Shown here piece after piece: positions 25,496-50,622 of a stretch of DNA of 64,000 nucleotides. The DNA is from Oculina patagonica (Eukaryota): positions 17,174,001 to 17,238,000 of the forward strand of contig NC_135761.1 of assembly GCF_052425735.1 (NCBI RefSeq). The letters are read 5' to 3'. The position numbers and the translations under genes were made by a program. Position 1 is the stretch's first letter. Each line of letters opens with the position of its first letter. The notes beneath the pieces are model-generated. The model was not told the DNA's origin. It ran no database searches and was given only the letters and a program-made list of their open reading frames with translations.

Positions 25496-28400
25496 ATGGT
25501 TTACAAAGCTGCAGTAGTCTTCGTACTTTCTTTCGCTGTTTTAGGACATTTGCCGCAAACACTGTGTTGGAAACGGGCAGAAAACGGCCGATTCTTTGAT
25601 GGAGCAGTTTTCCAACGCCGCAGCTTTGCGCTTGAAACGGATATTTTAAAGAAAACAAAAACGTTCGGGGAACTTCAATGCGGCTTTGCCTGTTTGTCTG
25701 AGAACTATTGCATTGCACAAACTTACTGCATTGAGTCTTGGGACAAAAATAAGGGCACTTGCTATCTTCATAAAAATGGAATCAAAGACGAACAAACTGC
25801 TGCAGCTGTTCTTGTGAGAAGGGACAGATGTATCTTTCAACAGTACATCAATTTTTACGTAAGTTGGCTAAAAAATTATTTGTGAGCATTGTAACTTGAT
25901 AAGGAAATCGTTAACATTATAACTTTGAATTATTTTATCTTTTGCTAGACAAACTGCCAAGATATAGTATAACAACTAACAAATGAAACCGATTTATTTT
26001 GCGATTAATATCGTTGGAATAGAATGTTCGGTGGATTCAATTTACCCATAATATTGTTGCCAAAGGATTTGATTCTCATGTTTTGACGAAAAATCCATAA
26101 TTTAAGGGAGCAAGATTTTTTTTTGTTGTAAAATCAAATCTGCATCTGTCAAATGTACAAGTTGTGCAACATTACATGCACATTTTAATTTTTCAAAGTT
26201 AAATGCGGTTTCTTTGTTTGCACATGTCACAATAACCGCAGAATTCGAGAAAGAATAATGATATTAAAGTAAAGAAAAATCTAACTTAACGCAGTTTTGA
26301 TGACAGTAGTGCAACTAAAAAATTTGGGAAATTGTGAATTTAAAAGCGAAAAACATATAGCTGTTTTAAAACCACGAACGCTTGACGCTTACGAAATTAT
26401 AATGAATCTTATTTTAGTAAACTGGCTGGATCTTAAACAAACAGTACGCCATCAATTCAAACGCCTCATGAAAGTACGTGTTAAGCATTCAAATCAAATC
26501 ACCCCATGTAACATAAGTGCATTTGAAACCAATGCATTCTTCGTAAAGAAAATTATTATTCTAAGGTTATAAATTCGGGGTTTACAATCGTCTCCATCTT
26601 TCCTGATGCAACCGCCACTTGTTTAAGGGTCATTCGCTCCTGTGAGGACCGGATGTAAAAAGACCCTCAAAACGAACCTAAGCCTTTCTATAATGCTGAA
26701 TTTCAGGGAAAGAAAAATACAGAGCGTATGAACATTTTCATAAAAAGTTCAACATCATAAAAAACTGCTAATAATTCATAATTTATTACAGAATTGGTCC
26801 CACTCCGATGGTTGTAATAAATATATAGTCCGAGCCTGCAAAAGGTCTGTTATTATGCATGCATTGTTTTCTTTCTTTTTTCTCGCACAATAAATGGGCA
26901 CACGCAAATTTGGTAAAAAACTAATAATGGATACGTTTTACCCTTACAAAAAAATGTGCCACCCCGCATTTCCTTATTTGGTAATCCCATCTAGTCTTTT
27001 CGAGTTGCAACAAAAAAAACTCCGACCTGTCAATAAAGCAATGTGATTTCTTACAGGAGGCCGCCTGTTCAAGACAATGCAAAAATGGAAACAAGTGTGA
27101 CTATGACTATGATAACAGACAATACGCCTGCCGCTGTTATCCGCCTTACTATGGAATGTACTGCGAGAAGATCCAAGGTGATACTTCATGTATGCACAGC
27201 ACAAAATGTCCGTTTTCACACTAGAAGACGGACAAATTGTGAATTTAAGACGGCTTTTAGACGACTTGTTCGTCTAGACGACCAAGTCTTCCTCAAAAGC
27301 TCGTCTTTCTAGACGGCCAACTCGACGGACAAATTCAGACGACTTGTAAGTTCAAAATCGTGTCCGTTCCGTAGGACACAAATCGCTTTCCATAAATTCA
27401 ACCGACACGACTGAGCCACCAGGTTGATAAAAGGAGTATTATTGCCTGTAATTGTCTTGTAGCCATGTAATACCTCTGGAGTAAGTGATAAATTTATAAC
27501 TCTGTAAAAGTTCTGGAAAACTTACACATTTTCTTTCTTCGTTAGCGAATTGAAACCTAAGTGCATGATGCAAAATGTAGGAGATAAACAGTATAAATGT
27601 ACAATTTTCACAAAGCTCTGGGCAAAATATTTTACCAATGTTATGATTGTATATATTGTTGTTGTATGTTCTTTAGATCGAAAAATGCTCTCAATGTTCT
27701 CCAAGGTACCCCACTCCTTTGCCAAACGTAACTTTGTACAATTTTTTGGACAAAAATTGTTAAGGTGGGATGTGACACGATTAAAAGGTAGCAACTCATT
27801 TGAAAGTGAACAATCAGCAATATAACCGAAAACTGAAATTGACGGACTATCAAAAAGGTTGCTTAAATTTACTTATTTACTTTTTTCTTCTTTTAGCATT
27901 ATCGTTCCGTTTCACCACTCTTGGCATGCAGGGCAATTCTGGACCGGTATCAACCGCTGGTTACGCCAACACCTCTCTTGATGAAACAGTCACACTAGAC
28001 CAAGGGATACAAATCTGGACAGTGCCATTCACAGCTTTATATAAACTAACTATAGCAGGGGCTTCGGGCGGGGACGCACTTACCTTTGGGGGGCACGGTG
28101 CAATTATTGGTGGGGAGGTACGACTTACCGAGGGAATTAAACTCCACCTTCTAATTGGTCAGAAAGGCCTTAAAGGAAGTTCCGGAGCGGGAGCGGGAGG
28201 GGGTGGGGGCACGTTTGTAGCTTTAAGTGATAATACGCTTCTGGCAGTAGCTGGTGGCGGGGGTGGTGGAGGCGGTCACATTACGGCAGAAAATGGGGCA
28301 AACGGGTCAACAAGCAGAAATGGAAGCGTGTATGGTGGCGTGAATGGTCTGGGTGGGTCAGTTTGCGCCAATGAGATAAACGACGCAGGGGGAGGGGGTG

Positions 28401-28723
28401 GTTTTCAAGGAAATGGAAAATGCAGTTACTCAATTACGTGTATCGCTCCTCGCATATGTGACCAGGCCGGGAGGTCTTTTTTAAATGGTGGTATGGGAGG
28501 CACGGGAAATGGAGTTGGTGGATTTGGTGGGGGTGGGGCGGCATACAGCTACTTTCCGGGGGGTGGAGGTGGATACTCTGGAGGTGGTGTGTATGCTTCG
28601 TCATTTGGTGCGAAGGGAGGCGGGGGCGGATCCTATTACACGGGTGAATTGAAACCAAGTAATGAAGTGAATGCTGCTGACGGATACGTGCTGATAGATT
28701 TCGATGGTAGCTCAGTAAAATAA
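25496..28723 (+). CDS. A1': secreted PAN-EGF-ALK/LTK glycine-rich-domain protein, ~436 aa
   Basis: Exon 25496-25858: signal peptide MVYKAAVVFVLSFAVLG and PAN C-x3-C-x5-C...C, phase 0. Exon 27057-27177: EAACSRQCKNGNKC...CRC...YYGMYCEK, a 6-Cys EGF, phase 1. Exon 27897-28723: GRD. All junctions are GT-AG. Confidence 0.9.
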
Positions 28724-50500: not shown

Positions 50501-50622
50501 CGTTGGAAAACTGCTCCATCAAAGAATCGGCCGTTCTCTGCCCGTTTCCAACAAAGTGTTTGCGGCAAATGTCCTAAAACAGCGAAAGAAAGTACAAAGA
50601 CTACTGCAGCTTTGTAAACCAT
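47531..50622 (-). CDS. A1: secreted PAN-EGF-ALK/LTK glycine-rich-domain protein, ~434 aa
   Basis: Exons 50622-50260 (signal+PAN), 49084-48964 (EGF) and 48351-47531 (GRD). GT-AG junctions, phases 0 and 1. Confidence 0.92.
48702..48933. mobile_element. MITE (PIF/Harbinger-like, 3-bp TSD) in A1 intron 2
   Basis: TIRs G(G/T)CCGTTTTCACACTA and an ATT duplication. A partly deleted copy lies at ~27207-27372 in A1'. Absent from A2 and A2'. Confidence 0.7.

Follow-up and report, generated by a model that had tools for sequence, protein, structure and literature searches.

A probable retained haplotig and a hyper-divergent block in a tandem cluster of PAN-EGF-GRD genes of the coral Oculina patagonica

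We analyzed a 64,000-nucleotide (nt) stretch of the Oculina patagonica genome (RefSeq assembly GCF_052425735.1, contig NC_135761.1, positions 17,174,001 to 17,238,000; here called the window, to which all coordinates below refer). It contains a tandem cluster of genes, named A and B, of which the A genes encode secreted-type proteins with a signal peptide, a PAN domain, an EGF domain, and a glycine-rich domain of the ALK/LTK type (GRD). Self-comparison of the window revealed an inverted repeat, in which arm 1 (23547-37527) corresponds to arm 2 (53300-38028), and a third GRD exon on the leftmost contig, outside both arms. The inverted repeat around the gap at 37528-38027 is most likely not a real palindrome, and the piece at 10589-37527 is most likely the second haplotype of the same locus; we give a probability of about 0.8 to the two arms being two haplotypes of one gene cluster. 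The haplotypes are ~1% apart over most of the locus. Judging from sequence comparison, a block of roughly 6 kb appears to exist in alternative versions on the two haplotypes, behaving like paralogs at one position. That this block came from exchange between tandem paralogs, and not from long-term balancing selection, we regard as about an even bet.

Contig anatomy and the inverted repeat

Three runs of N (10089-10588, 500 N; 29936-30067, 132 N; 37528-38027, 500 N) separate four contigs (C1 to C4) in the window.

1-10088: contig C1, apparently the conserved end of the array, haplotype 2, carrying the A2' GRD exon, the terminal exon of an F-box/WD40 gene, and, at the right end, a repeat
10589-29935: contig C2
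30068-37527: contig C3
38028-64000: contig C4
10589-37527: probable alternative haplotig (haplotype 1: B1, A1, and A2 minus its GRD), between the two 500-N gaps and inverted relative to haplotype 2

The A genes have three exons with canonical GT/AG splice sites, which encode the signal peptide and PAN domain (121 codons), the EGF domain (40 codons), and the GRD (272 to 274 codons to the stop). Two NCBI proteins labelled Oculina patagonica match the cluster exactly: P0002 (ACROYT_G012747, 436 amino acids, aa) is A1, exon by exon, and P0001 (LOC144649759, 434 aa) is 40143-39781 + 38330-38214 + 8840-8028. The exons are listed below, with haplotype-2 copies marked by a prime.

25496-25858, +: A1 exon 1 (signal peptide and PAN), exact match to P0002, GT donor
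27057-27177, +: A1 exon 2 (EGF), exact match to P0002, AG/GT splice sites
27897-28723, +: A1 exon 3 (GRD, stop codon included), PF12810 1.1e-7, exact match to P0002
33815-34177, +: A2 exon 1, haplotype 1; 0/121 aa and 8/363 nt different from A2'
35546-35666, +: A2 exon 2 (EGF), haplotype 1; 5 aa and 6 nt different from the A2' EGF exon
37517-37527, +: first 11 nt of the A2 GRD exon, the remainder lost in the gap
39781-40143, -: A2' exon 1, matches P0001
38213-38333, -: A2' exon 2 (EGF), which matches the EGF part of P0001 exactly, as nothing else in the window does
8835-9283, -: A2' intron 2, 3' part, with the empty site of the transposon at 36240-37293
8025-8845, -: A2' exon 3 (GRD, stop codon included; "A2" in the initial annotation), 272-aa open frame, PF12810 1.5e-11
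50260-50622, -: A1' exon 1 (PAN)
48964-49084, -: A1' exon 2 (EGF)
47531-48351, -: A1' exon 3 (GRD, stop codon included), PF12810 6.3e-10, intact frame, AG acceptor
24064-24438, -: B1 PAN exon (open frame), Pfam PAN_1 3.2e-5, in a region 98.5 to 100% identical to B1'
52404-54384, +: B1', haplotype 2, with a PAN open frame (52404-52787) and a GRD open frame (53530-54384)

The two arms share the same gene order and near-identical flanks and end at gaps or repeats, as retained haplotigs do; every contig end abuts a repeat, and 10589-37527 is flanked by two 500-N gaps. At the gap at 37528-38027, the left edge lies 11 nt into the A2 GRD exon on the + strand (acceptor AG at 37515-37516) and the right edge lies in A2' intron 2 on the - strand. 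The two sides thus do not continue one another and share no frame: two contigs of opposite orientation are joined here, and haplotype 1's own A2 GRD, which falls in this gap, is absent from the assembly. The 132-N gap (29936-30067) is within the A1-A2 spacer, beside a multicopy element (30086-30800), and is crossed by no reading frame.

The structure of A2' provides the clearest view of the inserted piece. Exons 1 and 2 of A2' are on C4 and exon 3 is on C1, on the same strand, and C4 plus C1 make one complete A2' gene. On arm 1, the homology between C4 and A2 extends to 35802 and that of C1 starts at 36033, leaving only ~230 bp unaccounted for. The GRD exon at 8025-8845 corresponds exactly to the last 271 aa of P0001. 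Because P0001 is exactly A2' exons 1 to 3, the annotated gene spans the inserted piece: its model joins the exons across an intron of ~29 kb that holds the whole piece, including A1 and A2. Removing 10589-37527 restores an intact A2' gene equal to P0001, as expected if the piece is a haplotig. A haplotig is also favoured by the WD40 neighbour, whose convergent orientation to the A gene on C1 is matched in Desmophyllum pertusum, and by the whole-genome search, which found just three close GRD exons.

We also aligned contigs (Logan) of four other samples (X1, X2, X5, and X10), which represent three organism labels plus a coral metagenome and do not include the assembled colony, to 33528-39527 at 95% likeness. 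Because A2 and A2' are 95 to 100% identical in ungapped comparison, this threshold separates them only partly, with cross-mapping in places. The arm-1 version of A2 was covered in all four samples, with 0 to 3% differences. The arm-2 version was well covered only in X5, by a 695-nt contig (38745-39437) at a depth of ~100, and X5 had no arm-1 cover over the homologous 34728-35127 (a hole among contigs this short proves nothing). X2 and X10 were almost devoid of the arm-2 version, and its depth in X1 was low (12 to 24 versus 42 to 83). For 38028-48027, word shares were 0.70, 0.61, 0.49, and 0.29 in X1, X2, X5, and X10, respectively, with a repeat baseline of ~0.28, which suggests that the arm-2 spacer is variably present, being carried by X1 and X2 and not by X5 and X10. 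Contigs are unable to prove absence, yet a presence that is in part alternative is better explained by segregating versions than by fixed paralogs. The initial annotation had treated A1 and A1' as putative alleles; we infer allelism likewise, from the contig anatomy, the spanning NCBI gene model, and the uneven, partly alternative presence in other samples, all of which bear on it indirectly.

If the palindrome were real, A1, A1', A2, A2', and the GRD exon at 8 kb would be fixed paralogs in an inverted segmental duplication, with exons hidden in the gaps. The scaffold is indeed written this way, the gap sizes are not known, in part of the region X5 carries the two A2 versions at comparable depth, and traces of both occur in X1 and X2. 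However, two gaps would each have to hide half a gene, with visible halves that are complementary in strand, intron sequence, and exon order, and a duplication recent enough to retain 98.5 to 100% identity cannot give 13% GRD divergence without later replacement. The haplotype-2 version of A2' is moreover absent or scarce in three of the four samples, and B1 on arm 1 has no GRD, a counterpart to that of B1' being found nowhere in the 529-Mb coral genome, which was the scope of all whole-genome searches reported here. A real palindrome thus appears quite improbable. Some observations count against two haplotypes nonetheless: the N gaps, having no known size, may conceal extra gene halves; the depths in X1 fit neither clean allelism nor fixed paralogy; and the Logan contigs are short and come under three organism labels, so that holes in their cover prove nothing.

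We envisage that the assembler kept 10589-37527 apart as too different to collapse and that the scaffolder then placed it, inverted, between 1-10088 and 38028-64000. Haplotype 2, without the inserted piece, would read WD40 gene, A2', A1', B1', and B2, and haplotype 1 would read A2 (GRD missing), A1, and B1, followed by a nest of transposons. False duplication is a standard artifact in heterozygous invertebrate genomes (PMC6267036; bioRxiv 10.1101/2022.08.29.505626), and such haplotigs are treated by Purge Haplotigs (PMC6267036) and by haplotig masking in the oyster genome (bioRxiv 10.1101/2022.08.29.505626). The piece resembles retained haplotigs (PMC6267036; bioRxiv 10.1101/2022.08.29.505626) in being a divergent allelic contig beside its counterpart, bounded by gaps, with repeats at its ends and genes truncated at contig ends. 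It differs from them in being inverted, so that it mimics a palindrome, and in being recognized by anatomy and a gene model, not by read depth. A false inverted duplication of ~27 kb in the scaffold would inflate gene counts, truncate B1 and A2, and force a 30-kb intron into an annotated gene; it should be masked for population or expression work on this cluster.

Identity along the arms and the hyper-divergent block

The identity of arm 1 to arm 2, computed ungapped, fell stepwise to a block of very high divergence and recovered at A2, as the following intervals show.

23547-25947: B1, spacer, A1 promoter, and PAN exon, 98.5 to 100% identical to arm 2
25947-27347: A1 intron 1, EGF exon, and start of intron 2, 93 to 97%
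27347-27760: 3' part of intron 2, 74%, with large indels
27897-28723: A1 exon 3 (GRD), 86 to 87%
28750-33236: A1-A2 spacer, no alignment to arm 2
33400-35800: A2 versus A2', 92.5 to 100%
Flanks of the transposon site in A2 intron 2 versus C1 8835-9283: 99%
27347-33236, +: hyper-divergent block, haplotype-1 version (3' half of A1 intron 2, GRD exon, and A1-A2 spacer)
40753-48770, -: hyper-divergent block, haplotype-2 version (A1' GRD exon, 3' half of intron 2, and spacer)

This profile bears out the near-identity of B1/B1' and the A1 promoter that the initial annotation had noted, as well as its remark that the spacers barely align apart from WD40 relics: 28750-33236 and 47504-40753 are unalignable except for ~230 bp and ~100 bp. 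The old hyper-divergent segment that it had centred on the GRD exon is real and sharply bounded, but it spans the middle of intron 2 to ~33236, so that the exon alone is not its centre, and within it the non-coding DNA is more diverged than the GRD exon itself. Both spacers are crowded with young repeats, different ones in each. In the haplotype-1 version lie the 132-N gap, a WD40-exon relic (31376-31607), and young repeats (28858-29144 and 30086-30800); in the haplotype-2 spacer, a WD40-exon relic (45492-45661) accompanies repeats (41820-42646, 42776-43980, and 44155-44907). Scanning the long open reading frames (ORFs) of the spacers against Pfam gave no matches.

On recount, the hand counts of the initial annotation for A1 versus A1' proved exact. 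The two differ at 1/121 aa (5/363 nt) in the PAN exon, at 4/40 aa (5 nt) in the EGF exon, and at 41/272 aa plus a 2-aa indel in the GRD (105 nt, 12.9%). The concentration in the GRD holds for all nucleotide differences (105/816 versus 10/484 in the other exons; Fisher P = 6e-13) and for synonymous ones (55/210 versus 4/75; P = 5e-5). The figure of about 34 GRD positions that had been given for A1 and its paralog A2 belongs to another pair: A1 differs from the GRD at 8 kb (A2') at 39 aa, and it is A1' that differs from A2' at 34. The claim that the putative alleles differ more than the paralogs therefore holds for 41 versus 34 and not for 41 versus 39, which is no real difference, and the value of 34 is itself lowered by an identical 123-nt conversion tract shared by A1' and A2'.

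The A1-A1' distance in the GRD is nearly the distance of each to the paralog A2'. Nucleotide identities are 87.3% (A1-A1'), 87.5% (A1-A2'), and 90.4% (A1'-A2'). Synonymous divergence (dS) is 0.31 to 0.32 for both A1 versus A1' and A1 versus A2', each with a ratio of nonsynonymous to synonymous divergence (dN/dS) of 0.27; A1' versus A2' gives a dS of 0.22 (0.27 minus the conversion tract) and a dN/dS of 0.29. Because the two versions of the block are as far apart as each is from the A2' GRD, they appear to behave like paralogs at one position. No replacement excess was found in the GRD, the A1-A1' dN/dS of 0.27 being that of paralog pairs. In the EGF exon, replacement and silent differences between haplotypes stand at 9:2 versus 1:12 in the PAN exon (Fisher P = 5e-4). 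This one observation fits a maintained dimorphism, yet relaxed constraint explains the EGF dN/dS of ~0.9 as well. Among the EGF exons (27057-27177, 48964-49084, 35546-35666, and 38213-38333), the paralogs A1 and A2 are 3 nt apart and the alleles 5 to 6 nt.

Two haplotype-2 segments outside the exons deserve mention. A degenerate tandem repeat at 40828-41412 (-), just upstream of the A2' promoter and present in haplotype 2 only, has copies 73 to 75% alike at offsets of ~170 to 240 bp and a 194-aa open frame rich in S/F/L/P, without a Pfam match. A 718-bp segment between B1' and A1' (51029-51747; indel near 25090 on arm 1) is likewise limited to haplotype 2. About 170 bp of it is a repeat resembling a short interspersed element (SINE) and the remainder is unique; since most of the segment is unique, it may reflect a deletion in haplotype 1, not an insertion.

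Origin of the block

The 5' and 3' parts of the A genes have different genealogies. The 5' parts group A1 with A1' (96 to 99% identity) and A2 with A2' (~97.5%), with ~85% between the groups, whereas in the GRD protein tree A1, A1', A2', and three sequences of other sources formed one clade (93/93) with no branching order among them. The genealogy thus changes at a breakpoint in intron 2, near 27350. Short mosaic tracts were found in the GRD exons. A1' and A2' agree over a run of 30 consecutive polymorphic sites (permutation P = 2e-4), which includes the tract given here.

47885-48007, -: gene-conversion tract of 123 nt, with no difference from A2' 8379-8501

A further run of 18 consecutive sites, at the 3' end of the GRD, agrees between A1 and A1' (P = 4e-4). 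The gene of another species (L032, GCA_044670265.1), whose downstream flank is orthologous to that of A2', is A1-like in alignment columns 316-450 (90 to 93% to the A1 type versus 77 to 78% to A2') and A2'/A1'-like elsewhere. The dS of A1-A1' (0.31) exceeds that of A2'-L032 (0.22 to 0.25). The flank of the block at 25947-27347 is 3.6% diverged. Paralog conversion in this zone was tested and rejected, as derived states split 22:21 between the A1 and A1' lineages; the divergence here looks like ordinary older divergence, far below that of the block. Given this low divergence and even split, the polymorphism may be much younger than the sequences of the block.

These patterns can be accounted for by a tandem array of variable copy number, in which unequal crossing-over or a long conversion on one haplotype would have set the 3' half of another array member behind the 5' half of A1. 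Short gene conversions may have shuffled the GRD exons ever since. The divergence of the block would then have been inherited from paralogs, not built by selection on alleles, and the polymorphism itself could be fairly young. Such an exchange agrees with the paralog-level divergence, the location of the breakpoint within an intron, the failure of the block's non-coding DNA to align, the ongoing conversion with the neighbouring gene, and the purifying selection that acts on the exon. Unequal crossing-over and conversion generate hybrid genes in opsin and globin arrays, the major histocompatibility complex (MHC), and plant NLR clusters. The Oculina cluster resembles the hybrid genes and pseudo-alleles of such tandem arrays in the different genealogies of 5' and 3' halves, the sharp intron breakpoint, the identical mosaic tracts, and the probably segregating alternative array structures; it differs in that no donor copy or copy-number variants were observed here and in its family, that of cnidarian secreted GRD proteins. 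Weighing against exchange, the whole-genome search found only three GRD exons of this subfamily, with no donor or third array member; the equidistance of three sequences is weak evidence; and on the left side divergence rises from 0.8% to 3.6% and then to the block, as it does around an old maintained polymorphism.

That rise is among the observations that would speak for an ancient allelic dimorphism of the A1 3' block, kept by balancing selection on the GRD as in recognition or immune-type genes and possibly shared across species. The A1-A1' dS of 0.31 exceeds the 0.22 to 0.25 separating A2' from its flank-defined orthologue in another coral assembly, the other species has an A1-type segment in columns 316-450, and replacements outnumber silent changes 9:2 in the EGF exon versus 1:12 in PAN (P = 5e-4). 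However, the GRD dN/dS of 0.27 is the same as between paralogs; the non-coding DNA of the block is unalignable, not merely diverged, and the spacers are full of different transposons; the equality of allelic and paralog distances would be a coincidence; conversion among paralogs can explain the segment shared with other taxa; and an EGF dN/dS of ~0.9 is compatible with relaxed constraint. We consider balancing selection unlikely as the origin of the block. The initial annotation had seen in the block the pattern of balanced immune and allorecognition loci, to which the low GRD dN/dS, the paralog-equal distance, and the conversion mosaic run counter. The alternative that it offered, exchange among tandem paralogs, is at least as good a fit, and between the two we tentatively favour exchange.

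Introgression from a related species by hybridization, with the introgressed segment later trimmed by recombination, would also place a divergent block on one of two haplotypes. Near-identical sequence of the locus in runs of three organism labels makes gene flow among close taxa plausible. Against this, the block is only ~6 kb long with sharp edges, its dS of 0.31 exceeds that to the orthologue of a clearly different species, and no donor was identified; we hold introgression to be highly improbable.

A stronger proposal is that the A1 3' block is an ancient selected dimorphism, partly shared across species, in the GRD, a domain of ligand-binding type, of a secreted ALK/LTK-like protein, with the adjacent EGF evolving by replacement, and that the cluster is a candidate recognition locus. 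This is distinctly unlikely in our judgement; if true, a stony coral would have a candidate locus for self/non-self or microbe recognition, built on a domain family so far without a link to recognition. Invertebrate allorecognition loci such as Hydractinia Alr and Botryllus fuhc have hyper-polymorphic extracellular domains. The Oculina cluster is like them in its clustered paralogs for extracellular proteins and its very divergent haplotypes, and differs in its unrelated domain family, the lack of a membrane anchor, a low dN/dS, and the two haplotypes seen. Should the block be a maintained polymorphism, a recognition role would be indicated for kinase-less GRD proteins.

Under paralog exchange, the window offers a two-haplotype view of a tandem secreted PAN-EGF-GRD family diversifying in a coral by a swap of the 3' module at an intron breakpoint, short conversion tracts between neighbours, and haplotype-specific young transposons. 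Module swapping and conversion are already well known in tandem families, and the underlying observation of the initial annotation is largely correct.

Encoded proteins, transposons, and the neighbouring F-box/WD40 gene

The GRD fold is a TNF-like core with glycine helices. The A proteins exceed the Pfam gathering cutoff of 24.5 bits for PF12810 (A1, 32.5; A1', 39.9; A2', 45.2), and B1' falls just under it (24.2). Residues 196 to 252 of P0002 match the ectodomain of Caenorhabditis elegans SCD-2 (PDB 7LIR chain A; phmmer, E = 1.1e-5). The AlphaFold2 model of P0002 has a mean predicted local distance difference test (pLDDT) score of 52, with the glycine-rich part below 50. Compared with the GRD of ALK/LTK receptor ectodomains (PF12810; SCD-2, 7LIR), the coral domains pass the Pfam gathering score and align in the conserved N-terminal strand region, but the coral frames have no transmembrane or kinase part, carry PAN and EGF domains in front, and occur in tandem clusters. 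No transmembrane segment or kinase domain was found in the frames, P0001, or P0002, all of which end with the GRD exon. The whole genome contains at least 43 GRD matches, with only three exons of this subfamily, all in the window. Literature searches yielded no publication describing this genome assembly, nor any that connects GRD proteins with the biology of corals; in the literature found, kinase-less PAN-EGF-GRD proteins of corals have no described function.

The transposable elements and repeats at the contig ends and in the introns are as follows.

36240-37293: young transposon of ~1055 bp with terminal inverted repeats of ~140 bp, in A2 intron 2, haplotype 1 only
9284-10088: multicopy repeat closing C1, at the break in the assembly; >60 genome copies at 76 to 98% identity
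10589-23547: young transposable-element nest of 13 kb, tiled by copies from elsewhere that are 93 to 100% identical; it cuts the B1 intron

The transposon at 36240-37293 has >40 genome copies at 95 to 100% identity. Its empty site on C1 (8835-9283) is 99.0% and 98.7% identical to 36033-36242 and 37291-37527, respectively, with the junction at 9074/9075, and the transposon-free joint (36240 to 37291) is present in samples X1, X2, and X5. Since the insertion is missing from the other haplotype and three samples and its copies are 95 to 100% identical, the family looks recently or currently active. Homology between the arms stops exactly at the end of an element, at 23547. Within the nest, 13483-14823 is an intact-looking 446-aa ORF of the reverse-transcriptase type, and a 518-bp repeat occurs at both 21695-22212 and 23031-23548 with 100% identity.

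At the left end of the window lies the neighbouring gene, of which the following exon is present.

5994-6143, +: last coding exon of an F-box/WD40 gene, convergent with A2'

This exon has 92% aa identity to the end of an F-box/WD40 gene of Desmophyllum pertusum, in which that gene is convergent to a single PAN-EGF-GRD gene, as on C1. Downstream of the GRD exon, two other coral assemblies (L031 and L032) share the flank found on C1. Decayed copies of the F-box/WD40 last exon occur behind both A1-type GRD exons (45492-45661 on arm 2 and 31376-31607 on arm 1), so that the "WD40 relics" of the initial annotation are real, and their position implies that the duplication unit giving A1 and A2 extended to the WD40 exon. 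The possibility that the spacer relic is part of a reverse transcriptase, raised by an "ADD" motif, was ruled out, the sequence being the F-box/WD40 last exon. The two relics share 2 derived bases in ~60 nt, where ~0.8 is expected by chance, a count that supports no inference.

In D. pertusum MU827781.1 (L034), an A-type GRD exon (9941-10785) and a B-type GRD exon (14406-15245) lie on the same strand, 3.6 kb apart and ~590 kb from the single A-type gene beside the WD40 gene. An A-type exon followed by a B-type exon in this coral suggests that the A/B pairing is older than the Oculina array.

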